26,166 bases of DNA from Leidyana gryllorum EB-2025a (taxonomy: Eukaryota > Protista > Apicomplexa), in the NCBI GenBank assembly GCA_048772705.1, contig JBLWGC010000096.1:1-26166 (forward strand). Direction: 5' to 3'. Position 1 is the first letter of the stretch. Every line of letters starts with the position of its first letter. Of this stretch, positions 1-26,166 are shown piece by piece. Made by a program: the position numbers and the translations under genes. The notes below the pieces were generated by a model. That model had not been told where the DNA came from. It made no database searches and saw only the letters and a program-made list of their open reading frames with translations.

Positions 1-93
1 CCAAACCTGCACAAACCTCCCAACACCTCCCAACACCTCCCAACACCTCCCAACACCTCCCACACCTCCCTCCCTCCCTCCCTCCCTCCCTAA
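1..93. repeat. C-rich simple repeat: (CAACACCTCC)x4 with degenerate flanking copies, then (TCCC)n ending in CCCTAA
   Basis: Exact 10-mers at 21-60, TCCC run at ~67-90, CCCTAA at 88-93. Abuts the truncated 5' LTR of element A. Confidence 0.85.
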
Positions 94-95
94 TC

Positions 96-269
96 GTTTG
101 GTCGGAACCAATGCACCAACGTGTCTGTGTCTCCGTCTCGGGCCGGCCGGCACGCGGGAGACACAGACAGGAAGATAGATCACGTGAACTTACCTTTTTG
201 TGTGTTGCCCGTTGTTGCGCAATGGACGCCAAGTGGTCGCCGCCGTAGCTAATCCACCGCCGGGTTACA
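96..269 (+). repeat. Element A 5' LTR (partial, with a 42-bp internal deletion)
   Basis: Matches 4815-5030 except for a 42-bp gap after ~211 and one substitution (GTGGTC vs GTGATC). Ends GTTACA. Confidence 0.95.
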
Positions 270-1330
270 TTGGTAGCAGTGCGTCGTTTGAACAGGCCGC
301 GACCGGCCAGGACCCCAACGAAGCACCTCTGGACGACGGACCCACCACGGAAGGGACCTACAACCGTGCTGCGGAAGTCCAGATGGTCATGAACGCCGCT
401 CAAGATCTTTTACGACAGATGGAAGTACTCGCCGAGGCACACCAGACCGGAATCCAGACCAACATCCCCACCAAGAGTGGAAAGGAAACCGCAGCGGTCA
501 CCGACGAGGCCCCGACAGCCCCAAGCCGTCTAGCCCAGGCCGCCCTGAAGAAACAATCAGACTTCACAGGCGAAGATAGCACCTCGGCCCGAGCCTGGCT
601 CGAGGCTTGTGAGGCCAAGTTCGCGGCCTTTGGAATAACAGATCACACAGACCGCATACGCTGCCTGGGGATAATCCTCGGGGGAAGTGCCGCCGAATGG
701 TTCGCGGATACGATTGAGGAAGGACTGCAAGGCACCTGGCAAACTTACCGGAAGCGGTTCCTCGCAGAATTTGAAACGCGAAGCGCAGCGGAGGATGACC
801 TGACCACTTGGGCCGATCTCCGTCGCACTGGGACGATGAGCCAGTATATTACTCAAAGCCGCACGCTCAAAAGACGGTGCGGAAAGGACGTTACCGAACG
901 AGGCGCCACCGCATTCTTTTTCAGAGGACTCCGATCCGAGGACCGCGTGGCTTTGGCTGCGCATGCGGGCAAACCCTTCGACGACTTGTGCCGGGCGGCG
1001 ATGCTATACGCCACGATCACGGACCAACAGATGCTGCAGCAACCGATCGGCTGCAGAGTCAACGCCATCACCAACAACAGCCGAATGGAGCATTCAAGAC
1101 CCCGCACTGTAGGCAAACGTTGTCCCTTCTCGCACGATCAGTGCACGAGCGAAGGACGATGCTACAATTGTGGCGAAGTGGGGCACCGCAACGCCCAATG
1201 CCCCTTACCGAGAGATCCTCGAAACCGAATGCAGCGACCCCGCACGTTCGCCAGCCAAGCCATGGAGGACCCGGATTTTCTGGATCGCCTGAACACCGAG
1301 GAGCCGGTATGTCAGGCAGCGATGCAATAG
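200..1330 (+). CDS. gag: Element A Gag (capsid-like region plus CCHC knuckle); the likely native ATG is lost in the 5' LTR deletion
   Basis: FTG..ARAWL..GSAAEWF capsid-like motifs and CYNCGEVGHRNAQC knuckle. The 3' LTR copy shows in-frame ATGs at 4946 and 4970. Confidence 0.92.
   Translation: MCCPLLRNGRQVVAAVANPPPGYIGSSASFEQAATGQDPNEAPLDDGPTTEGTYNRAAEVQMVMNAAQDLLRQMEVLAEAHQTGIQTNIPTKSGKETAAVTDEAPTAPSRLAQAALKKQSDFTGEDSTSARAWLEACEAKFAAFGITDHTDRIRCLGIILGGSAAEWFADTIEEGLQGTWQTYRKRFLAEFETRSAAEDDLTTWADLRRTGTMSQYITQSRTLKRRCGKDVTERGATAFFFRGLRSEDRVALAAHAGKPFDDLCRAAMLYATITDQQMLQQPIGCRVNAITNNSRMEHSRPRTVGKRCPFSHDQCTSEGRCYNCGEVGHRNAQCPLPRDPRNRMQRPRTFASQAMEDPDFLDRLNTEEPVCQAAMQ
271..282 (+). promoter_or_regulatory. 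Primer binding site TGGTAGCAGTGC (initiator tRNA-Met type)
   Basis: One nt after the LTR end. The identical 12-mer follows the 5' LTRs of B, C and E. Confidence 0.9.
1273..1323 (+). promoter_or_regulatory. Putative -1 ribosomal frameshift signal (G_GAT_TTT plus stem-loop)
   Basis: GGATTTT at 1273-1279 in gag register. GCCTGA..ACCG (1287-1298) pairs with CGGT..TCAGGC (1305-1317). pol is in the -1 frame. Confidence 0.85.
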
Positions 1331-4300
1331 GGCCGGAACCCACTCTGACGGTTCGCTGGACCCTCCGCAATCCCCGCTCCAACGAAGAAGAACTCGCAAC
1401 GGTATTGCTGGACACCGGCAGCAACACAAACTGTGTGGATGCCCGAATGGTACGCCGCTTGCGCCTACCCACAAAACCTTGCGCTGAACGAATTAGTACG
1501 CTTGCGACGACCGATACGCCATGCCGAGAAGAAACCGAACTTACGTTGAAAACCCGAGAACGCCAACAGCTGCCGATCCGCTGCCTCGTTGTTCCGAACC
1601 TACCATACGATTTAATAGTCTCCACATCGACCATCCTTGGACTCCGATTGCTACTAGGACGGAACGCCCAAGGCCACTTGACCGTCATGGAAGGACGAGA
1701 CCTACCGACACAAAAGATAGACCCCCTGTGGCTACGACAGGACAAACACCAAGGACCCACCTGTTGTCAGGTTCTGAGTACCTCGACTGACGCACTGGAC
1801 CTCCCGGATAGCGAAAGATGGATCCATACCGAGTTCCCTTCCGTCTTTCTCCACGACTTACCTATGCCGCCTCACCGAGAAGGGGTGGACCACGCCATCC
1901 AACCCCAAGATCCAACGGCCCTACCCTTCGTGCGGGCCCCATACAAGGTTCCTCAGCGATTCCTGGACGAGATGAGGAAACAAATCGCCGACCTGCGTCG
2001 ACAAGGAAAAATTAGACCAAGCTTCTCGACGTGGGCCTCCCCGTGCCTATTTGTACCCAAGAAGGACACGAGCGTCCCACGCCTCGTGTGCGACTACCGA
2101 AGATTGAACCAAGCAACGGTTCGGGTAGCGTCTCCGATGCCCTCGTTAGAGGAAGCACTTCAAGTACTGGCCGGCGCCACCATATTCTCCACACTTGACC
2201 TAAAAAGCGGATACCATCAAATACGGATGGCTCCGGAGAGCTGTGCCCTTACCGCGTTTTCCACACCATGGGGCCTCTTTGAGTGGACAGTCATGCCCAA
2301 CGGGCTGATGAACGCTTTGGCTACCTTCATGCTTCTAATGAGAATGGTGTTCCATGACCTGATAGGTATCTGCGTCTTCGTTTACCTTGACGACGTCCTG
2401 GTATTCTCGAAGTCCCGCGAAGAGCACCGTTCACACCTGCGACAAGTACTACAACGGCTGAAAGACTACGGATTGATAGCTCACCGGAGAAAGTCACACT
2501 TCTTCCGCACCGAAGTCGATTATATCGGCCATCGAATTTCGGTACAGGGCATAATGCCGCTCACGGACAGAGTAGCGGCCCTGCGGGCAATCCAACCACC
2601 GACGACACTCAAAGAGGCCCAAAGTTTTTTGGGATCCTTCAATTACTACAGGCGTTTTATACCCCACTTCTCCGATATAGCTAAACCTATTTACGATGGC
2701 ACCCATCAACTCAAGTCCCCCAACGCTCCACTGCCAAATAATCCGGCGATCTGGACCGCGGTAAGGAATCTAAAGGAGTCACTCTCCAATGCCACACATC
2801 TTTCCTTCCCACACCCACAATGCAAGGAGCTGTGGGTGACCACAGACGCAAGCGCACACGCATTGGGAGCGGTGCTGGAACAAGGAGAAGAAGGAGGGCG
2901 GGCTCCAATCGAATTCTTTTCAAGAACACTGACGGATGTGGAGAGAAGATATGCTACACACGAGAGGGAACTGCTCAGCATCGTCACCGCATGCAAGCAC
3001 TGGAGACATCTACTGCTCGGGAGAAAGGTTGTCATCCATACGGACCACAAGCCCCTTACGCACTTGCTCAATCAGGCCCACCTGACGGACCGACAACTGA
3101 GATGGATCATCGTCCTGTCTGAATTCGACTTAGAGATCCGCTACATACCCGGAGCAAACAACCTCATAGCGGACCTACTCAGCCGCCCACCCCTCCGCAA
3201 GAACAACGAGAGGATGGAGGCACCGGCACAACAAATAGAGGAAGAGATTGCGACGGTGCATGCTAGTCAAGCCGGGCCGGTGAACCTGGAAGAACGACTA
3301 AGACAAGCCTGGGCCGACCGACGGACATCCCTTGAAGACGCAGAAGAGATCGAGTGGATAGAAGGGCTACCGGTGGAGAAGGACGGCGTTATCCGAGTAC
3401 CACCAGACCCGGAGCTTATACGCCTTATCATCTCATACAACCATGATACCAAATTCGCTGGCCACTTGGGCCCGGACAAGACAGCTGCACGAATACGATC
3501 CCTCTTCAACTGGCGAGGCCTCCAAGCCGATACCGCACAATACTGTCACCAATGCGACGTTTGCCAGCGCGCGAAGAAACGAAACCACCATCCGGCGGGA
3601 TTACTCAACCCCATCAAGAGCCCAATGTTCCCCTGGGAGGATGTGGGTCTCGACTTCCTGGAATTGCCAGAAGACCCGGACACAAGACAAGATTACGTTA
3701 TGGTGGTGGTTGACCGCCTTACCCGGAGAATAAGACTCATCCCATGCATCAAGAATATTACCGCAGCTGAAACAGCCACGCTGTTTATCGAGAATATCGT
3801 TAAAATACATGGGATTCCCCGGCGTATCCTGAGTGACAGAGACCCACGCTTTACATCAACAATATGGAAGGAAATGATGACTCAGCTCGGCGCACAGGTA
3901 AACTTGACCACGGCTTACCACCCGCAGACGAACGGGCTCGTGGAGAGAGCCAACCGTTCGATTCTACAAATGCTCAGATGTACCTTGGAAGGGATCGGCC
4001 ACCGCTGGAGTCACCTCCTTGCTGCAATAGAAATTGCGTACAGCACAGCGAAACAAAGCTCCACAAGATGCTCTCCCTTCGAAATGGATACGGGCCGGAC
4101 GAGCCTACCATTCCGAATCTACGCCCAAAAGCTCCAAGAAGCTTCCGACCGCCTAGCACAGGTCCGCGAAGCACAAAAGCAACAAGCAGACAAACGCAGG
4201 ATGGAAGTCAAATTCGAACCAGGCGACCAAGTATTATTGTCCACTCGCCACCTCCACCACGTCCCGCCGAGCAAGCTGAACTTACCATACTATGGCCCCT

Positions 4301-4488
4301 TGACGGTGATTACGGCCCACGAAGGTGACACTTACACCCTACGCTGTCCAGAAAGTTGGCACATCCATCCCAAGTTCCATGTCTCCAGATTGGAGAAGTA
4401 CCACCAGCCAACGCACCACCGCGCCCCTACACCTGAGGAAAGGGAGACGCGGGCACCCCAGAACGCTAGCCACCGACTCTATACATGA
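1273..4488 (+). CDS. pol: Element A Pol: aspartic protease, RT, RNase H, integrase
   Basis: LLDTGS, LDLKSGYHQ, YLDD, TDAS/TDHKPL, HHCC zinc finger, DDE core and GPY/F module. In frame with ORF 808..4488. Confidence 0.96.
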   Translation, partial: GFSGSPEHRGAGMSGSDAIGPEPTLTVRWTLRNPRSNEEELATVLLDTGSNTNCVDARMVRRLRLPTKPCAERISTLATTDTPCREETELTLKTRERQQLPIRCLVVPNLPYDLIVSTSTILGLRLLLGRNAQGHLTVMEGRDLPTQKIDPLWLRQDKHQGPTCCQVLSTSTDALDLPDSERWIHTEFPSVFLHDLPMPPHREGVDHAIQPQDPTALPFVRAPYKVPQRFLDEMRKQIADLRRQGKIRPSFSTWASPCLFVPKKDTSVPRLVCDYRRLNQATVRVASPMPSLEEALQVLAGATIFSTLDLKSGYHQIRMAPESCALTAFSTPWGLFEWTVMPNGLMNALATFMLLMRMVFHDLIGICVFVYLDDVLVFSKSREEHRSHLRQVLQRLKDYGLIAHRRKSHFFRTEVDYIGHRISVQGIMPLTDRVAALRAIQPPTTLKEAQSFLGSFNYYRRFIPHFSDIAKPIYDGTHQLKSPNAPLPNNPAIWTAVRNLKESLSNATHLSFPHPQCKELWVTTDASAHALGAVLEQGEEGGRAPIEFFSRTLTDVERRYATHERELLSIVTACKHWRHLLLGRKVVIHTDHKPLTHLLNQAHLTDRQLRWIIVLSEFDLEIRYIPGANNLIADLLSRPPLRKNNERMEAPAQQIEEEIATVHASQAGPVNLEERLRQAWADRRTSLEDAEEIEWIEGLPVEKDGVIRVPPDPELIRLIISYNHDTKFAGHLGPDKTAARIRSLFNWRGLQADTAQYCHQCDVCQRAKKRNHHPAGLLNPIKSPMFPWEDVGLDFLELPEDPDTRQDYVMVVVDRLTRRIRLIPCIKNITAAETATLFIENIVKIHGIPRRILSDRDPRFTSTIWKEMMTQLGAQVNLTTAYHPQTNGLVERANRSILQMLRCTLEGIGHRWSHLLAAIEIAYSTAKQSSTRCSPFEMDTGRTSLPFRIYAQKLQEASDRLAQVREAQKQQADKRRMEVKFEPGDQVLLSTRHLHHVPPSKLNLPYYGPLTVITAHEGDTYTLRCPESWHIHPKFHVSRLEKYHQPTHHRAPTPEERETRAPQNASHRLYT

Positions 4489-4810
4489 TGGAGAAGATTA
4501 CAGGAGAACGAGTAACCACAACCGGCCAACTGGAGTACAAAGTGAAGTGGTTGGGATTCTCGGACTCGGCATCTACGTGGGAACCAGCGCAACATGTGCT
4601 CGAAGGAGAAGGCGCGGACCTCATTGCCCAATTCCGCAGAGACTGGAACCAGAGACATCCCGAGGCGCCGTACAACGAAGTGGATGGGGATGTAACACAC
4701 GGTTACCGAACCCCCCTCTGGAGCCCTTGTTGGACCGGCCTACACTACTCCGTCCGGACGAAGGGAGGGCCCTCGGAGGAAGGCTACTACGCCAAAGGCG
4801 GATAGATTGA
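4485..4810 (+). pseudogene. Element A chromodomain and LTR-encoded integrase tail, separated from pol by two small frameshifts
   Basis: YKVKWLGF..STWEP in ORF 4485..4805. The tail GCN..LLDRPTLL..GGRLLRQRRID is in the frame of ORF 4325..4810. Both parts are contiguous with pol in D and F. Confidence 0.88.
4677..4690 (+). promoter_or_regulatory. Element A polypurine tract (appears ~4 nt short)
   Basis: GAAGTGGATGGGGA directly before TGTAAC. Compare F: GAAGTGGCGGGGGAGGGG. Confidence 0.7.
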
Positions 4811-5030
4811 CGGTGTTTGGTCGGAACCAATGCACCAACGTGTCTGTGTCTCCGTCTCGGGCCGGCCGGCACGCGGGAGACACAGACAGGAAGATAGATC
4901 ACGTGAACTTACCTTTTTGTGTGTTGCCCGCTATCCGATAGACCAATGGACTCCTCGAGCGATGCTCCGATGTTGTTGCGCAATGGACGCCAAGTGATCG
5001 CCGCCGTAGCTAATCCACCGCCGGGTTACA
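4691..5030 (+). repeat. Element A 3' LTR, 340 bp
   Basis: TGTAAC...GTTACA termini, preceded by the PPT. Confidence 0.95.
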
Positions 5031-5766
5031 TTCTGTATGTGGAACATCTCCACCTCCATCGCTTGCTTCAGCTCTTCAATCTTCCTCTTGTGTCGATCCT
5101 TGAGCCTCTTAGCCTGCTGAACTGCGGGTTCACCCCAAATGGGCACGCCATGTGTGGCAATGGGTGCGTCAAGGGCTTGAGAGCGAGCCCGAGCGGAGCT
5201 CCCTTGAAGGGGGATGGGTTCCATGTATGCTTGGTGACCCGGTGGGTGGGAGAGAGGTGTTCGAAGAGGAACAGTGTGATTGTGGATGATATCCTCAACC
5301 AACCGTTCGTCTTTGAGTAGGGATGAGGGGGGAGAAGCTGCCGCAGGGGGAAGAAGGGGGGGGAGTTGGGAGGCGCCGGTGGTAGCCGTCGAGACGGTGG
5401 GTGGTCTCTGTCCAAGCCCGAGCGGCTGGGAGAGCGGAGGGCTTGCTGTCGAGGCGGCTTCGGTGAGGTAGGACCGCGTCGGAGCCCTCACAACCATTGT
5501 GGTTGTCGCTTCCACGGGGCTTCGGGCTCGGAGGGCTTTGGAGGGGGACTTACCTGTGTCAGAGAAGGGGGTGAACTTTCAGCGGGCTGGGTAGAGGGGG
5601 TAGCAGGGCTGTTGGGGGGCGACTCGGGAGGCGTGGCCTCGATGGTCTCTTCTTCGAGCTCAGTGTTGCTCGAGGCTTCCATGTTGAGCGTCGTTGGTAC
5701 GCTGGGAAGGGCCAGAGCCTCACCTTGAGCTTCAGTGGGTGCGTCACAAAGGGCTTTCTGTGCCAT
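5031..5766 (-). pseudogene. Repeat U ORF2: Pro/Ser/Thr-rich protein with a distal charged helix, interrupted by element A
   Basis: ATG at 5766 (MAQKALC) after an AT-rich leader. ORFs 5488..5913 and 4931..5515 join if one base is restored in the G4 run at 5516-5519. Confidence 0.55.
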
Positions 5767-6068: not shown

Positions 6069-6761
6069 TTAGATGATGTTGCCCATCTCAACTTGGAACC
6101 CTTTCCCGCAAATCTGACACTTCATGTATCCCCGATGTACATGAGGAGGGGTAGGGGGAGCTAGTGGAGGGGTAGGGGCTGCCAGCCTTGGCAATGGCTT
6201 CAGGTCCACCGTCGAGGCCAGTGAGTCTCTGCGAGTGCTCAATAACTCTGTTTGCTCATCTTGAACAACCGTTGAGAGACACCCAATGACCTCAGTGGAC
6301 GAGACCGAAGCTGAGGGAGACTGAGAATCACTCAGTGGCATGCTAACTGGGGGGCCACTGCATGCTGGCTGGGGGAGGGAGCGAATGGGGGAGGGGTTAG
6401 CTGGCTGGGGAAAAAACCGAACAACCGGGGGTTCAGGCTCCATTGGCTGGAGCTCTACTCGCAATTGGGGTCGCGGGGCATCCCAGTTCCTCGCAAAGTG
6501 CCGAAGCTCTTCCTCGGCTATGTGAGATATGTGGGGATGAGGTGTGGGAACTGACTTGGTGTGGGAACGTGCCAGACCAGTCTGAGTGGCACGAGGTCTT
6601 GTCTTGGGAACATCTGGGGGGAAGAAAGCGAGCGCGAGCGAGAAGAGGGCTTTTTGGATCTGAGAACAAAAATAACAGTCCATGTAAGCGGTTCCCCCGC
6701 CAGTGGTGTCGGTAAGTGGTTGCCGGTGGGGGCGTTTGCTACTACGTAATTCCAGTGGCAT
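6069..6761 (-). CDS. Chimeric ORF: LTR-encoded Gag N-terminus of B fused in frame to the 3' part of repeat U ORF1 (Pro-rich, CxxC motifs)
   Basis: ATG at 6761 in the B 3' LTR. Reads MPLELRSSKR...TAY, then MDCYFCSQ...CQICGKGF to the stop at 6069. Confidence 0.55.
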   Translation of the reverse strand: MPLELRSSKRPHRQPLTDTTGGGTAYMDCYFCSQIQKALFSLALAFFPPDVPKTRPRATQTGLARSHTKSVPTPHPHISHIAEEELRHFARNWDAPRPQLRVELQPMEPEPPVVRFFPQPANPSPIRSLPQPACSGPPVSMPLSDSQSPSASVSSTEVIGCLSTVVQDEQTELLSTRRDSLASTVDLKPLPRLAAPTPPLAPPTPPHVHRGYMKCQICGKGFQVEMGNII

Positions 6762-6922
6762 CTGCAAGCGGTTCCAGACTTAATAAAAACGTGTTTGTAA
6801 GGTGCGCGTCTCCGTGTGTGCCGGTTTGCCGGTCATCGGAGACGTGATCTATTATACTGGACCAGCTCTGGCTGGCCAGGGACTAAGCAAAACAGGGCTA
6901 TGTAGTGTGACTGGGGTCTACA
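6683..6922 (-). repeat. Element B 3' LTR, 240 bp
   Basis: TGTAG...CTTACA on the minus strand. One mismatch seen vs 9256-9495. PPT GAAGGGGGAGGAG at 6923-6935. Confidence 0.96.
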
Positions 6923-9255: not shown

Positions 9256-9495
9256 TGTAAGCGGTTCCCCCGCCAGTGGTGTCGGTAAGTGGTTGCCGGT
9301 GGGGGCGTTTGCTACTACGTAATTCCAGTGGCATCTGCAAGCGGTTCCAGACTTAATAAAAACGTGTTTGTAAGTTGCGCGTCTCCGTGTGTGCCGGTTT
9401 GCCGGTCATCGGAGACGTGATCTATTATACTGGACCAGCTCTGGCTGGCCAGGGACTAAGCAAAACAGGGCTATGTAGTGTGACTGGGGTCTACA
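9256..9495 (-). repeat. Element B 5' LTR, 240 bp, containing the gag ATG (9334)
   Basis: Direct repeat of 6683-6922. Confidence 0.96.
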
Positions 9496-9901: not shown

Positions 9902-10518
9902 CACCCTTGCGGGTTTCGCCGACCTGCACAACGTTGGTCGGGAGTGCCCTTCTGAGCACGTGGAGGATTTGTTGGTCATTCATGTTGGCAATGCCCCTTC
10001 TAAGTTCGCGGAAACGTTGTACGAAGGATGTGAGTGTTTCTGGTGTGGCCTGCAGGTCCATTAATTCGTCAAGGTCCGACCGCGTGGTGGTTCCAAATTC
10101 GCGGTTGAAGCAGGTCACTAATTCGCTCCATGTGTATTCCCGCAGGTCGGCTTTGCTGCTTGCCGTGTTCAGCCAGCGTGCAGCTGAATCTTTAAGCGTA
10201 CCGCACGCGATGCGAGTTCTTGATTCGTGGGTTATCAGTAGGGTGTCGAAGGCGGCCTCCAAGTTGTCAATGTGCGTTCTGGGGTTCTGCGTTCCATCGA
10301 AACTGCCGGTGAGTTGTGATACTAGTCTGATGTCCCTTGCCAGGTTCGTGTTGGTCCGATCGGTGTTTGCAGTGTCTGGGGGAGGTGAGCGGATCGCAAG
10401 CACTGCTACCAGTGTAAGTGTCGGGCTCTGGGGGGTCGAGGGTAGGCCGTCGGGCCTTCTGGGTGAGCGCCTTGGGGAGGATTGACGCCCTTCTGGTGCG
10501 TTTAACGGTAAGAGTCAT
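9902..10518 (-). pseudogene. gag: Element C gag fragment (ATG at 10518 in the LTR, frameshift shortly after the PBS, cut by repeat U)
   Basis: MTLTVKRTRR...DTYTGSSA in ORF 10267..10752. Capsid-like part in ORF 9864..10403. Confidence 0.85.
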
Positions 10519-10650
10519 ATTCGTGTGTTCGTTGTAGGTTCGCTCCCGTGTCTCCGTACCCGGTGCCGGCCGGCACTGGAGACACAGACACGCTCGCAGC
10601 CGGACTGATTCGTCAGCCGGTGACATGCAACTAAAAAGGGTACACAGAGG

Positions 10651-10918
10651 TGTAAGGATACACTTAATCACCCGCCACTGCATGAGTGGACGAGCCAGGT
10701 AAGAGTCTGTGTCTCCAGGCCGTGCCGGCCGGCACAAGGGAGACACAGACACGTGTGTGCTACTAGAGTTAGCGTTTTTTGGCGTTGTTGATCTGAACTA
10801 ACTAAGAACTGAATTCACTGGAACACGATGACTAATCGACGAACAACTACTACGAAACGAACTGTAGAGTCGGAGCCAACAACAGAGGCTCCCCCTCAGA
10901 ACGGAAGCGACTCTTACA
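10651..10918 (+). mobile_element. Solo LTR S (268 bp) of a further family, inserted in the C LTR
   Basis: TGTAAG...CTTACA termini flanked by GAGG/GAGG. Carries the central hairpin and an ATG at 10828 opening 30 codons that end TAC-A at the LTR edge, like the other LTRs. Confidence 0.88.
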
Positions 10919-10980
10919 GAGGGCTATGCTGATCGGGACCTGGATTCAGGGGGGTTCAGTGGTGTAAGTCACCTCTTACA

Positions 10981-11795: not shown

Positions 11796-12103
11796 TGTGA
11801 CGCGGTGAGTTTAGGTTGTCCCCAGCGGTGCTACCTAGGAGCACTTTACCGTTGCGCAGGATCGTCGAGTCGAGGTTCATGTTCACAAAGGTAAAAGCAC
11901 ACGTGTGTCCGTGTCTCCGCCCGGCCGGCCGGCCGGTCTCCGAGACACAAACAAGCAGGGCGGATTGACCGAGGTCAAGCGCCGTCAGAAATCCGCCTTT
12001 GGCGTAGGTGGTGTCCACCGCAGAGGACTCCGTCTGCTGGATCGAGGAGTGTGGGCCGATCCAGCAGAGCAAGGGGGGTTCGGGGAGGTGTCATTCCGTT
12101 ACA
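11796..12103 (-). repeat. Element D 3' LTR, 308 bp
   Basis: TGTAAC...GTCACA after the PPT GAGGGAGGGG. Has the central hairpin and an ATG at 11880 in the gag-type register. Confidence 0.88.
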
Positions 12104-12845: not shown

Positions 12846-13072
12846 TGTAAGGTACTACACCACCTCTTAAGTTATGTGAACCCTTTTTATTGTGCATGAA
12901 CATGAGCAGCGTGTCTCCCGAGGGAGACACCGGCATTACAAACACGTGCGATCTATAATGACGGTCACCACCAGAAGGGGATCTAAGCTGTCAGTCTTAC
13001 CTAGGTCCCTTACCCAGGGAACCAAGACCAAGACCGGCAAGGCACCGCCGGTGGACGAGCCACCAACTTACA
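12846..13072 (+). repeat. Element E 5' LTR
   Basis: TGTAAG...CTTACA, direct repeat of 17293-17519. Confidence 0.96.
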
Positions 13073-13908
13073 CTGGTAGCAGTGCTTTTGAAGAAGACCA
13101 GCCCAGAACCCAGAATTACATCTTGGACGCTCCCAGAACGGTTTCACAGGACACGATTGCCAAGGACATCAAGCTTGTCACCCAACTAACCAGCTTCTTC
13201 AATGGAAACCAGAACCCACGCACTCATCTAGACAACCTGGAGGCCGCGTTCGATACGCTCATGATACAGGCACAGCATCGAACGCGCATTGCCTGTGGCA
13301 CCCTTAAGGATTCGGCTGCCCGGTGGCTGAACGCCGCAAGCAGAATCATGCCTCTGAGGGAAGTTCCGTGGAACGTATTCGTGGACAGATTCATACAGGA
13401 GTTCGGTACCACTAGCAAAAGTGATTTAGAACAACTCATGGAATTGCGGGCCAACCCGAGAGACCTTACTGGATTTGTGCAGAAAGTGCGCGAACTACGC
13501 CGCGGACTATACAACATTGACGATGAACAGATGCTTCAGATCATCAAACGGGCTCTCGCGGGGTCCGATCGGGACCTCCTGATGACAAGAAACCCACACA
13601 CGCTCGAAGAGGCATTGGAATTTTTGGCGCAACTAGGGCGCGAGCACAGGGGACAACCAGATAGTTACCGGGCCCTGCCAGTGAGACCCAAGGGAGTGGG
13701 CTTCGCTAACCCACATACTCGTGAACATTGTCAGAAGAACCGGCTGTGCTATACTTGCGGTGGGGCAGATCACATAGCGCCAGCCTGCCCAAAACGCACT
13801 AAGCAGCCGGAAAGGAGCGCAAACAGACGAAGCAAAACCTTCCTTATAACCCAAGATTCAGAAACAGAGTTAAGTCCGGCACCGGAGGGATCCAACCAGG
13901 ATTTTTGA
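12958..13908 (+). CDS. gag: Element E Gag (316 aa, ATG inside the LTR)
   Basis: MTVTTRRG...PTYTGSSA, capsid-like region and CYTCGGADHIAPAC knuckle. Confidence 0.92.
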   Translation: MTVTTRRGSKLSVLPRSLTQGTKTKTGKAPPVDEPPTYTGSSAFEEDQPRTQNYILDAPRTVSQDTIAKDIKLVTQLTSFFNGNQNPRTHLDNLEAAFDTLMIQAQHRTRIACGTLKDSAARWLNAASRIMPLREVPWNVFVDRFIQEFGTTSKSDLEQLMELRANPRDLTGFVQKVRELRRGLYNIDDEQMLQIIKRALAGSDRDLLMTRNPHTLEEALEFLAQLGREHRGQPDSYRALPVRPKGVGFANPHTREHCQKNRLCYTCGGADHIAPACPKRTKQPERSANRRSKTFLITQDSETELSPAPEGSNQDF

Positions 13909-13945
13909 TACAGGCCCCGCTCCACACGTTGGGAGACAAGGGGCC
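13899..13945 (+). promoter_or_regulatory. Putative -1 frameshift signal of E
   Basis: G_GAT_TTT immediately before the gag TGA. GGCCCC (13913-13918) pairs with GGGGCC (13940-13945). Confidence 0.88.
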
Positions 13946-16900
13946 ACAAGAACAAGGAACGGAGCAGCCAACCCTAGTCTTTCGAGCAAGCACTCGAAAC
14001 CGCGCAACGGTACTATGGAATCTTGGGTATGGCCCCAACAGACAACAGGTTCTGTGCCTGATTGACTCGGGAGCGGATGTGAACATTCTGGATACTAGCA
14101 TGGCGACGAAGCTAGGAGTCAGGATGAACACCAACAAGACAGCTGTCCTGGAGGGCATAGGTGAACGCAGAAGCACCGCAGAAGCAACAGCAGACCTTTA
14201 CACCTCCAGCGGGAGGAAATGGAGAATGCGGTTTGTGGTCACTAACATAACCCCGTTTGATCTGATAGTGGGCGTCTCAGGCATTATGGAATTGGGGCTT
14301 GCGATCGGCACAGACTCAAGCGGACAACTGACGATTCTGGAGGAGAAAGTACTCACAAACAATGAAACAGAGAACCGATTGTTAGTCTCAATAGCAGCAG
14401 CGCAGACGGTGGAAGTTCCAGCCGAGGAAGAATGGATTGCTCAGGAATATGGTGAGATATTCAAGTCACCAACCGAACTACCTCCGTCTCGGGGGTTTCA
14501 CGATTTCGAGATTGACTTGCAACCGCACGCAGTTCCGTGTGCGGAGAGGGCCTATGGCGCCTCAAGCAGGAATAGGGCGGAGATGGACCAGCAGATAGCG
14601 GACCTACTTACCAAAGGATTCATCAGACCATCAAAATCGGCATGGGGGGCACCGTGCTTCCTGGTTCCGAAGAAGGACACGGCTACTCCACGTCTAGTGA
14701 TCAATTATAAGCAACTGAACGAACAAACAGTGGTATACGCTTACCCAATTCCACGACCTGACCTATCAGCAGCCGAGTTACGGCAGGCAACAGTCTTCTC
14801 AAAATTGGATCTCCGCTCCGGATACCATCAGATCCAAATCAGAGAACCCTTCCGTCATCTCACGGCCTTCACAGCGCCTGGTGGGAAATACGAGTGGAAC
14901 GTGCTACCGTTTGGCTTACGCAATGGCCCACCTGCCTTTGTAGCGTTCATTGAGGATATTCTGCGACCGTGGATCGGCAAATGCGCGATGGCATATGTCG
15001 ATGACATCCTAGTGTATAGCCCCACCAGGGAGAAACATCGGGAAGATGTCAGAAATATTTTAACAGCCCTGCGGGACCATCAATTGCGGGTACATCCGCA
15101 AAAATCAGCCTTTTTTATCACCGAGGTGGATTTCATTGGGCAACGACTGGACACCAATGGCATACATCCGGCAGAGAACAAGCGGAATGCCTTTGCGGAA
15201 GCAGAACCACCGGCCACGATGGCCGAGCTGAGGAGGGTGCTTGGCGGAATGACATTTTACTCGAAGTACATCAAAGGATTCGCGCAACTGGCACTCCCAT
15301 TCCATGACATGGTGGCCGAGTGCCGCTCAAAGGCGGAAAGGTTAAAGTGGAACAATGACTTGACTGACAGATGGAGGCGACTGACAGGGGCGTTTGGGGA
15401 CCCACTGACACTGGCCGTGGTGGATGATTCGCTACCCTTCCACGTGGCAACGGATGCGAGCAGCAAAGCGATTGGAGGAGTACTGGAACAGAGGAGAGGG
15501 GACGAGCGACGTATAATTGAATATTTTAGTGCCAAGCTGACCCCGACTCAACAGAATTGGGCAGTACATGAACGTGAACTATACGCGATCATGGCGGCCC
15601 TGAAACGATGGCGTCATTACCTTCTCAGCAGGGAATTCTTCGTCCACACTGATCACAAGCCCTTAACGGTGCTCAACAAAGCGGATTCAGCGCTCAGCCC
15701 CAAACTGGTAAGGTGGTTAGTGAAAATCTCGCAGTACCCAGCACGTATTGATTACGTCCCCGGAAGCCAGAACACGCTTGCGGATATCTTGAGCAGGGTG
15801 GGCACAACGTCAGCCAAACAAATGATATACATGGCAAGACAAGCGAACGGCACCGATTTCACGAGAGCATTGAAAGAGGCACATGACAGAGTCACGGTGG
15901 TACCGGACGGCTTCGAGCAAACGAATGGATGGATTCATGACGAGTTTGGACGACTGTTTGTGCCAGCCGAGAGCGACTTAAGACGGACGGTATTGACAGA
16001 GAGCCATGATTCGGCCATCAGTGGACATATGGCTCACGACCGCACCCTTTTCAGACTCCGCAGCCAATTTAACTGGCCTGGCATCACGGAAGACGTCAGG
16101 ACATACTGCCGACAGTGTCCGACTTGTCAGCGGAGCAAGGTCTTACCCAAACGCACGCTTGGATTACTCAACCCAATCCCACCGCCCGAACTGCCATGGC
16201 AGGAGATTTCAATTGACTTCCTGTCGATGCCAACCGACCCAGACTCCGGAGCTGACTCAATTATGACGATCATCGATCGCCTAACAAGACGTCTACTACT
16301 GGAACCCTTCACTCACCCTGCCACGGCCCGAGCAAGTGCCCAGACGCTGATGAATCGGGTAGTCAGGGAGCATGGTTTCCCTAAAGCCATAATCTGCGAC
16401 AGAGACAGTCGATGGCTTGGAGAAGTATGGAGCGAATTACTCACCATCACCGGAACGAAATTGAAACCCAGCACCAGAGGTCATCCTCAAACCAATGGCC
16501 TAGTCGAGAGAGCTCACCGTACACTCCTGCAGTCCTTAAGATGCCTCTGCGACTCTATTGGACCTCGATGGACAGCGAAATTAGCCTCAGTCGAGTTTGC
16601 CTTCAACTCAATGAGAAACGCCTCGACGCAGCTCTCACCGTTCGAGGCTGAGCGCGGTTACACCCCCGCGATACCACTGACTGCAGGACTGCCTACCACC
16701 AGCATGGGAGACGGATTACTACACTCTGAACTGATCACGATCCTTCAGGACAGAATCAGATCCGCGCAGGACAAGCAGAAGGTACAACACGACAAAGACG
16801 AGAGGAGGCGAGTCTCCAAGTGGGCGATTGGACGCTGGTAAAAACCAGTGGTGTCCGCGGCGCCCCAGGAGGAAAGCTAGCGAAGCCGTACATGGGACCC

Positions 16901-17297
16901 TTCAGGGTACGAACGGCGCAACCAGGAGATGTGTATGAGCTGAGCATGCCGACGAGATGGCAGGGATGCTCCAGGTTTCACATTTCACGGCTACGCAAGT
17001 ACGAAGGAACACCACCAGCAACCGAACAAGACACTCTGTACCAGATGGAAGAGAATCTTGGCAGAGAGCAAGGGCGCACGAGGAACTCGTTACCTCGTCA
17101 AGTGGCAGGGCTACCCGAGAAGTGAGGCAACATGGGAACCACTGACTACGATCATCAATGCCGACGCCACTGATCTAGTCATACAATACAGAGAACGATG
17201 GAACGAACGCAATCCGAGGAACCCATTCACTGAGAGTGAACTAAGGGGGACCGATTTAATTCCGCTTACGCAGCAGGCGATGGAGGGAGGAGTGTAA
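13899..17297 (+). CDS. pol: Element E Pol (PR, RT, RH, IN, chromodomain) with two single-base indels at ~16795 and ~17050
   Basis: LIDSGA, LDLRSGYHQ, YVDD, TDAS, HHCC and DDE. ORFs 13905..16841, 16820..17125 and 17058..17297 join as DKRREEASLQVGD and YQMERILAES..YLVKWQGY..TWEP. Confidence 0.93.
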
Positions 17298-17519
17298 GGT
17301 ACTACACCACCTCTTAAGTTATGTGAACCCTTTTTATTGTGCATGAACATGAGCAGCGTGTCTCCCGAGGGAGACACCGGCATTACAAACACGTGCGATC
17401 TATAATGACGGTCACCACCAGAAGGGGATCTAAGCTGTCAGTCTTACCTAGGTCCCTTACCCAGAGAACCAAGACCAAGACCGGCAAGGCACCGCCGGTG
17501 GACGAGCCACCAACTTACA
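17293..17519 (+). repeat. Element E 3' LTR
   Basis: Direct repeat of 12846-13072. Confidence 0.96.
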
Positions 17520-21018: not shown

Positions 21019-21377
21019 TGTAATGGCCATCGGTTCCGTGGGCGTTGTCGGTGAGTTCTCGGCCACTACGTAATTGCATCTTAGATACTTCGTTCGCAGG
21101 TTCAGTGGTCATGCCGGTCGGTTCGCACGTAATCAAAAAGGTGAGTTCACACGGTGATCTAACTGTGTGTCCCCCCCGTGTCTCCGGCCGGCCGGCCGGC
21201 GCGCCGGAGACACAGACACGATGAGGACGGACTGGCTTCGGTTGGACGTCGTCAAACGCCTCGGTGACGGAGTAGCCTTCCCCCGACGCTGGTGCCTTGG
21301 GTCGGTTCTAGCGTCGGGGCTCTATCGAGGAGGGGTGTTCGTTGCGACGATGTCGGCATTGGCTCTAAAGTGTTACA
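21019..21377 (-). repeat. Element F 3' LTR, 359 bp
   Basis: Terminal TGTAA/TTACA, PPT, central hairpin, and an ATG at 21112 opening a frame that ends TAC-A. Confidence 0.9.
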
Positions 21378-25140: not shown

Positions 25141-26040
25141 TAGTTTGCCTGTAACCTTTGGTTCGGCGTTTCGGTCGGCTTCGATGGCTGTTGTGAGTGC
25201 TGTTTGCTTTTGGATTATGTGGTTTATGTGTGTTTATCGCTGCATTGTACTGTGTTTGCGTGTTTGCGAATGTTTAGCTTTCAATTCTCTACACGTTGCG
25301 GTTGCTGTAGCGTGCGCAAGTACGGTCTGATGTGGTGTGTATTGTGCTAATAAAAGACTGTGACGATATAGTTGTGTTGCTTAGTATGTTGACAGGTATC
25401 GTGCTTGTTATGTACTGATTTGTGAGACTATATGAGCTGGATATGCATGATTGTATGAGTGTATGGCGTGTATTTTGGTAACTGTGCTGTGATGTGGTGT
25501 GCTCAGTTTGCTAAAGTGAATATGGAGCAACTTGGAAGGTTATGTGTGAGTGATATTGGTTTAGATGGTTTGTCTGTTAGGGTGTGAGGGGTCTAGAGTG
25601 AGTTAGCGATTCGCTCGTTGATTGAGGGAGTATTTGTAGACGTATAAAAGCTTGTAATGCTAGATATAGGGGAATCAATGAGATTCAAGTTGAATTGAGA
25701 GTGTTGAGAAGAATGTCATGAGTCCAATGCGTATCGTGGACATTATGTATTGGAGTGAATGGGAATTTGTAAGAATATGCGGATGGAGTCAAGTTATGCA
25801 TAGGATTTGAGTGTTGATGCGGACGACATGAATTTGGCTAATGATAGGTAGGTTAATAGGAGTATATTGACAATTCTGATGTAGTTCGAGGTGTTGTAAG
25901 AGGGTGGTGGTCAGTTGTTTGCTATAAAACATTGAGAGAGTGTATATATGCTAAGAGTTATGAGTATTCGAATTGTTAGTGTACGAGCGGGATGTTAAGG
26001 CTGATATGTATGTTGAGTAATAGTGTGTGTGAAGAAGTAT
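25141..26040. other. C-poor, T/G/A-rich tract of unknown nature
   Basis: Loss of gag homology and strong C depletion on the + strand. No repeat unit or credible ORF. Confidence 0.6.
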
Positions 26041-26041
26041 T

Positions 26042-26161
26042 GATGGGGTGTGGGGAGCGCCCTTGTCGCTTCGCTCGGGCGCTTCCCCGTACCCATCTTT
26101 CTGCATTCAATGATTGAGCCACGGTGTAGTTGTCAACGCGTAATCATAGAAATGTAAAAGA
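26042..26161. other. Two adjacent imperfect inverted repeats
   Basis: GATGGG..GGGGAGCGCCC / GGGCGCTTCCCC..CCCATC (26042-26097), then TCTTTCTGCATTCAATGATT / AATCATAGAAATGTAAAAGA. Confidence 0.6.
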
Positions 26162-26166
26162 AGAGG

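Follow-up and report, generated by a model that had tools for sequence, protein, structure and literature searches.

Gag reading frames that appear to begin within the LTR in compact Ty3/gypsy chromoviruses

The window analysed here, a whole stretch of 26,166 nucleotides from a eukaryotic contig with a G+C content of about 55%, is a nest of Ty3/gypsy chromoviruses. A layout in which Gag has its start codon inside the long terminal repeat (LTR) is real, ordered and conserved in these elements, and its presence genome-wide is confirmed. The preferred reading, to which we give a probability of roughly 0.78, is that they are autonomous chromoviruses of 4.6-5.2 kb whose Gag would be initiated in the LTR and translated through the attachment (att) site and the primer-binding site (PBS).

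Seven families are represented in the window. Element A occupies positions 1-5030 on the forward strand and has a damaged 5' LTR, element B (9495-6683, reverse strand) carries an internal deletion, and element C (10980 to about 9904, reverse strand) consists of a 5' LTR, a PBS and a Gag stub. The solo LTR S (10651-10918, forward strand) sits within the LTR of C. The body of element D (21018-17520 and 12845-11796, reverse strand) is interrupted by the full-length element E (12846-17519, forward strand), and F is a 5'-truncated element with its 3' LTR at 21377-21019 on the reverse strand; on its 5' side, the D-family element breaks off within Gag, precisely where the F 3' LTR ends. Pfam domains follow the order Ty3-type capsid, CCHC knuckle, protease, reverse transcriptase (RT), RNase H, integrase, Tf2-type SH3 and chromodomain. 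The Gag domains (PF19259, PF03732 and PF00098) represent a Ty3-type capsid and a CCHC knuckle, and Asp_protease, RVT_1, RT_RNaseH, Integrase_H2C2 and rve stand in that order in A, E and F, which is the PR-RT-RNase H-IN arrangement; the integrase-before-RT order of Ty1/copia elements (Pseudoviridae) was not found, since the integrase follows RT-RNase H in the Pfam annotation. A C-terminal chromodomain (PF00385) is present at residues 1036-1084 of F Pol, preceded by SH3_Tf2-1, and chromodomain-like K-W-x-G-(Y/F) stretches can be read from the translations of A and D. When Pol was searched against a protein cluster atlas, generic RT clusters only were returned.

Genome-wide, 20 full-length elements of 4.6-5.2 kb were delimited, with LTRs of 157-379 bp. 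Their LTR pairs are 97.6-100% identical (13 pairs are identical), and many of the elements have 5-bp target-site duplications; direct LTRs with TG..CA ends, the duplications, and a PBS and a purine run (PPT) adjoining the LTRs mark them as LTR retrotransposons. Tandem arrays with shared LTRs (LTR-body-LTR-body) were also seen at L052 (contig C230), L053 (C82) and L059 (C43), where the sequence upstream of a 5' LTR is a Pol terminus from that family.

There is no non-coding nucleotide between the LTRs. Pol in most families ends ..G-G-V-stop, with the PPT purine run encoding its final Gly/Glu residues, LTR nt 1-2 providing the last two bases of the Val codon, and LTR nt 3-5 providing the stop (TG followed by TAA or TAG). 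TGT AAC is read as Cys-Asn in A, D, F, L064 and L066, where Pol goes 117-130 nt into U3 as a basic tail conserved at the protein level; the tail is continuous with the chromodomain in L064, F and D and one base out of frame with it in the A copy. The sequence-only reading had proposed that such a tail leaves only the hairpin core of the A, D and F LTRs non-coding; the long tail is confined to some families, and most stop at LTR nt 3-5. Its term "dual-coding" is loose, as Gag head and Pol tail have separate portions of the LTR to themselves and come into use in different LTR copies, and their frames do not overlap.

The non-coding part amounts to only 75-200 nt per LTR, with a conserved palindrome, a T-run and an A/C-rich leader. 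The palindrome has the form GTGTCTCC - GCCGGC-rich loop - GGAGACAC and is seen in most families of both clades, at 4839-4888, 10705-10760, 11905-11945, 12912-12935 and 21178-21220 in the window and in most LTRs of L054-L076, with traces in relatives outside the genome. The T-run comes after the palindrome in most families and before it in E, and the A/C-rich leader comes next. The palindrome is a candidate promoter element, R hairpin or terminator. The core of the A LTR folds with a clear 13-bp stem, while the stability of the whole 159 nt is not above that of shuffles (z = -0.71).

An LTR ATG with a frame open to the LTR end is present in all seven families, as had been claimed from the window, and the fixed (T/C)AC-A register was likewise borne out. 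The ATG stands at 4946 in A (forward strand, 85 nt to the terminal ACA), at 9334 in the 5' LTR and 6761 in the 3' LTR of B (reverse, 79 nt), at 10518 in C (reverse, 106 nt), at 10828 in S (forward, 91 nt), at 11880 in D (reverse, 85 nt), at 12958 in E with a 3' LTR copy at 17405 (forward, 115 nt), and at 21112 in F (reverse, 94 nt). All seven distances are 1 mod 3, so that the last LTR base opens a codon, and the junction reads ..TAC-A, or CAC-A in D.

Element E displays the layout in full. Its 227-nt 5' LTR (12846-13072, forward strand) contains a T-run, a short hairpin (12912-12935) and the ATG, and the Gag ORF (12958-13908, forward) runs from this ATG through the PBS at 13074-13085; the next in-frame ATG comes only at about 13260, already within conserved Gag. 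The Pol stop TAA is nt 3-5 of the 3' LTR (17293-17519, forward; ..G-G-V-stop), and the purine run (PPT) ahead of it is coding. The A 3' LTR (4691-5030, forward; 340 nt, TGTAAC..GGTTACA) consists of a Pol tail (4691-4810), a non-coding core with a 13-bp hairpin (4811-4945) and a Gag head up to 5030. Similarly, the F 3' LTR (21019-21377, reverse; 359 nt) has a Pol tail at 21377-21252 and a hairpin core, and the D 3' LTR (11796-12103, reverse) has a Pol tail at 12103-11975 and the terminus GTCACA; the copy of the D family with a PBS is L040. A and F each have a second in-frame ATG at -61 (4970 and 21079) directly before the conserved L-R-(S/N)-G-R motif, where F reads M-Q-L-R-S-G-R. The position -61 agrees with the modal one in the other families, and 4970 and 21079 are likelier starts than 4946 and 21112.

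The claim that the frame continues as Y-(T/I)-G-S-S-A through the PBS is supported in A, B, C and E, but the 5' LTR of A has no ATG and C is frameshifted. The A 5' LTR is a remnant (96-269, forward) without its first ~124 nt, in place of which positions 1-95 hold a low-complexity CCTCC / CCAACACCTCC repeat. Comparison with the 3' LTR (96-211 = 4815-4930, 100% identity; 211-271 = 4972-5032, 98%) reveals that a 42-nt piece, equivalent to 4931-4972, is also missing, so both ATGs are gone and this copy has no LTR start. Its frame is open from 200, and the PBS (271-282, forward, with 16 nt of tRNA-iMet complementarity, to 286) is read as G-S-S-A-S within the Gag frame at 200-1330, which contains Ty3_capsid, Retrotrans_gag and zf-CCHC. 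The C 5' LTR (10413-10980, reverse), split by the solo LTR S, is followed by a PBS at 10411-10400, and the frameshift of this copy falls between the PBS and conserved Gag; the other copy of the family, L033, is in frame. The B 5' LTR (9256-9495, reverse) has its PBS next to it at 9254-9243, while the frame from the ATG in the B 3' LTR (6683-6922, reverse) enters a flanking repeat, X. This frame (6761-6069, reverse) has 230 codons and the corresponding frame past the A 3' LTR (4946-5320, forward) has 124 codons, both far exceeding a typical random run; their products had no Pfam match.

The PBS starts one base after the LTR, is translated as G-S-S-A, and is complementary to the 3' end, with CCA added, of the product of a tRNA-Met(CAT) gene ending ..GCACTGCTA. 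This gene has the initiator features A1:U72 and an AUCGAAA T-loop, and complementarity to tRNA-iMet spans 12-19 nt including CCA, depending on the family, which marks the elements as tRNA-primed; on the basis of this match, the self-priming of Tf1 and Tj1 is not what is found here. A search pattern for the initiator tRNA-Met gene had 221 matches in the 15.5-Mb assembly, and almost all of the matches listed read as copies of that gene, many slightly mutated, scattered across dozens of small contigs.

To test the register genome-wide, the assembly (15.5 Mb, 237 contigs) was searched for exact junctions made of the LTR-end ACA, one pyrimidine and the PBS, which gave 55 matches, with 0 for the reversed control. 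The ..TAC-A frame with an LTR ATG is open to the LTR end at 51 of the 55 junctions, upholding the register beyond the window, and it continues for at least 300 codons into Gag at 33. Frame 0 runs into Gag at none (0/55), and frame 2 always stops because the PBS reads TGG TAG, which leaves only two frames able to read through. The distance from the LTR ATG to the LTR end ranges over 28-133 nt (median 64). Clustering of the junction products at 80% identity yielded 34 families, 32 of which have the LTR ATG; the junctions without it are singletons or decayed copies of ATG-bearing families. A Gag-alignment profile search of the genome, compared with all 77 exact PBS sites, placed 15 more PBS sites inside Gag matches, and these matches start at profile positions 1-22; several C/E-clade Gag copies from the same search have no exact PBS nearby. 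The register is inherited and maintained by selection.

Conservation of the LTR-encoded residues is also seen in the protein. Main-clade Gag starts with M-x-L-R-(S/N)-G-(R/K) and C/E-clade Gag with an M-P-P-K-R-T-K-R-like stretch; although identity among the Gags is only 20-58%, little or no variation is seen at Met1, Arg4 and the PBS-encoded G-S-S-A. Among the 17 families with the main motif that were used for codon analysis, Leu3 is kept through 3 codons and Arg4 through 6, both CGN and AGR, and mean entropy is 1.01, 0.63 and 1.38 at the three codon positions, lowest at the second and highest at the third. In the same families, the 30 nt upstream of the ATG have near-maximal entropy except in the last few bases. 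Counting all frames, the 40 nt upstream hold 2 ATGs where 16 are expected, an 8-fold depletion; of the 32 families with the start, 19 have A at -3 and 18 have G at +4. Moreover, the frame stays open across 14-44 variable codons in 32 of the 34 families, and the C/E clade has no in-frame ATG between the LTR ATG and conserved Gag. On this pattern, protein-level selection begins exactly at the LTR ATG. The proposal of a compact chromovirus lineage with its Gag start in the LTR, read through the att site and PBS, and with Pol ending in the 3' LTR, has strong comparative support from the conserved motif with its synonymous turnover, from the upstream ATG depletion, and from the C/E clade without an alternative start before conserved Gag.

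We infer the following course of expression. The genomic RNA would start in the LTR core, upstream of the A/C-rich, ATG-free leader, and initiation would take place at the AUG 28-133 nt (median 64) before the LTR end. Ribosomes would then read the LTR end, including the integrase-bound terminus with ..TAC-A as Tyr, next the spacer base and the initiator tRNA-Met PBS as G-S-S-A, and then a variable, probably disordered stretch of ~100 residues before the capsid and zinc-knuckle domains. The LTR would supply the Gag N-terminus with its short basic motif. The Gag N-terminus of Tf1 carries a nuclear-import signal, and one might guess by analogy that the basic motif is a signal of this kind. At its other end, Pol would use the PPT as codons for its last Gly/Glu and stop at LTR nt 3-5, or run into the basic U3 tail in A, D, F and their relatives. 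Transcription could in principle start downstream of the LTR ATG.

Relatives outside the genome separate the Gag start from the other features. A word-index protein search with one Gag gave no match, and a Gag profile search of 1.84 billion representative proteins gave 16,825 relatives. Among the best 150 of the 16,825, only P0003 combines the N-terminal motif with Y-T-G-S-S-A, and its contig (L081), which is independent and public, has the same LTR/ATG/PBS layout. The next-best relatives, P0011 (L082), P0012 (L083), P0008 (L084) and P0015 (L085), have the Gag ATG 3-17 nt after the PBS, and in L082 the Gag frame meets the PBS TAG as a stop, so that read-through from the LTR is impossible there. 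These four share with the elements described here the same or a near-identical PBS, TGTA..ACA LTR ends, short LTRs, the LTR T-run motif and a basic Gag N-terminus; as relatives with the same PBS that differ only in the Gag start, they provide a clean contrast for the role of an LTR-encoded N-terminus. An LTR ORF in L085 (1357-1461) with the target-like motif M-A-K-R-V-L-R-S closes before the LTR end; it may have arisen by chance or be left over from an earlier LTR start. In a quick Gag tree three groups have support, namely the main clade (96), the C/E clade together with P0003 (98) and the outside group (99). The tree did not resolve their branching order, so that the LTR start may have been gained once, gained twice or lost in the outside group.

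Among known systems, Ty1 of S. cerevisiae (Ty1/copia, Pseudoviridae) has a 53-nt 5' UTR and a PBS at RNA nt ~95-104, inside GAG (PMC7969010), and these numbers would place its Gag AUG in the LTR. It shares with the elements described here an in-frame Gag AUG ahead of both LTR end and PBS, so that the LTR end and the PBS for tRNA-iMet fall within a frame continuous into Gag. However, Ty1 has its integrase before RT and no chromodomain, whereas these elements are PR-RT-RH-IN-chromodomain; the shared layout is convergent, not homologous, and a Ty1-type solution has arisen independently outside Ty1/copia. Ty3 of S. cerevisiae (Metaviridae) agrees with them in class, domain order, Ty3-type capsid and tRNA-iMet primer (PMC11381356), but it has a 193-nt 5' UTR holding the 5' PBS and a 214-nt 3' UTR (PMC11381356), and both UTRs are essentially absent from the internal region here. 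The contrast drawn earlier with the ordinary Ty3/gypsy leader is sustained by this 193-nt 5' UTR (PMC11381356) and by the four relatives that start Gag after the PBS. Tf1 (S. pombe) and Tj1 (S. japonicus) are likewise compact chromoviruses of ~5 kb with short LTRs, Tj1 being 5,003 bp with 244-bp LTRs, and retrotransposons and tRNA genes cluster in their genomes; both are self-primed (PMC4600332), unlike the present elements with 12-19 nt complementary to tRNA-iMet. An identity as Tj elements was rejected for the same reason, as Tj1 is self-primed (PMC4600332).

An LTR-internal Gag start is known from yeast Ty1, and a literature search found none in chromoviruses; within the partial coverage of that search the layout is not known from Ty3/gypsy chromoviruses, which is no proof of novelty. 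Coding within U3 has precedents in HIV nef and MMTV sag, retroviral genes inside U3 through which part of the 3' LTR is protein-coding. They are comparable with the Pol tail of A, D and F, but theirs are accessory genes, whereas the LTR here carries the Pol end and the Gag start themselves.

Several other interpretations have to be weighed. The idea of the sequence-only reading that every 3' or solo LTR is a portable promoter with start codon and peptide tag is unsupported here. It is unlikely that the LTRs serve as modules of promoter, leader, AUG and basic N-terminal peptide, closing exactly at the integration boundary, that tag host proteins and, likewise, that the LTR start is ancestral to a wider clade and was lost in the post-PBS relatives; if the former were true, solo and 3' LTRs would be translated into downstream sequence and yield N-terminally tagged chimeric host proteins. 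We also regard as improbable a scheme of two Gag isoforms, comparable to MLV glyco-Gag and Ty1 p22, in which the LTR AUG would give a long Gag on an upstream-start RNA and a shorter Gag, made from a downstream AUG or a shorter RNA, would be the main capsid protein. In many main-clade Gags another in-frame Met occurs 40-70 residues from the start, ahead of the capsid domain, so that a shorter product may exist in them, and A, F, L064 and others have two in-frame LTR ATGs, but the downstream Met positions are not conserved, the C/E clade has no Met before conserved Gag, and the depletion of upstream ATGs indicates that the first AUG is the one in the LTR.

There is very little room for the conserved LTR stretch being a nucleic-acid signal, such as a U5 element for tRNA contacts, packaging, integrase binding or polyadenylation, with Gag starting after the PBS. 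U5 and the PBS flanks are cis-acting in Ty1 and Ty3 (PMC7969010, PMC11381356) and the nearest outside relatives do begin Gag after the PBS; on the other hand, the 3 Leu and 6 Arg codons with their CGN/AGR switches, the third positions as the most variable, the absence of stops from the 14-44 variable codons of this frame in 32 of the 34 families and the lack of a conserved downstream ATG all speak for a protein. Least credible, at a chance close to nil, is that the open frame is chance or a composition effect in G+C-rich, stop-poor sequence. In its favour, when the last 150 nt are mononucleotide-shuffled, 13% of trials per family produce such an ORF, and long frames occur on both strands of the window; against it, the ORF is present in 32 of 34 families, frame 0 never runs into Gag at the 55 junctions, the motif is conserved and entropy steps sharply at the ATG. 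The initial argument that seven of seven families in one register is unlikely by chance is backed by the shuffles (13% per family vs 32/34), but it counted related families as independent, and because the 34 families share ancestry, these counts are not independent trials. Conservation of the motif with synonymous codon turnover, together with the upstream ATG depletion, is the ground on which both the nucleic-acid signal and chance are rejected.

With Gag initiated in the LTR, these elements would approach a limit of compaction, in which att ends, PBS and PPT all double as codons in an autonomous retroelement, and they offer a natural test case for the mutual constraint of replication signals and protein sequence. 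For annotation, callers that seek Gag after the PBS truncate these proteins, and LTR masks hide real coding sequence.

Two further features of the window were observed. The region at 25150-26166, beside the truncated Gag of F, is strongly strand-asymmetric, C-poor (12% C) and G/T-rich, and has no ORFs; a reduced-alphabet alignment, made to probe the idea of a strand-specifically hypermutated element copy, gave non-specific matches only. Repeat X, of at least about 800 bp, occurs at 11797-11021, 9903-9493 and 6682-6275, is not LTR-like, had no Pfam match, and may be a non-autonomous or recombinant element. It begins at the same base behind the D LTR end and behind the truncated Gag of C. The junction of Gag stub and X (..V-Q-V-G-E-T-R-K-G / E-P-D-H-Y-R-R-F-F..) is also present on contig C43 (L014 and L015), where the LTR and PBS ahead of it belong to a different family.
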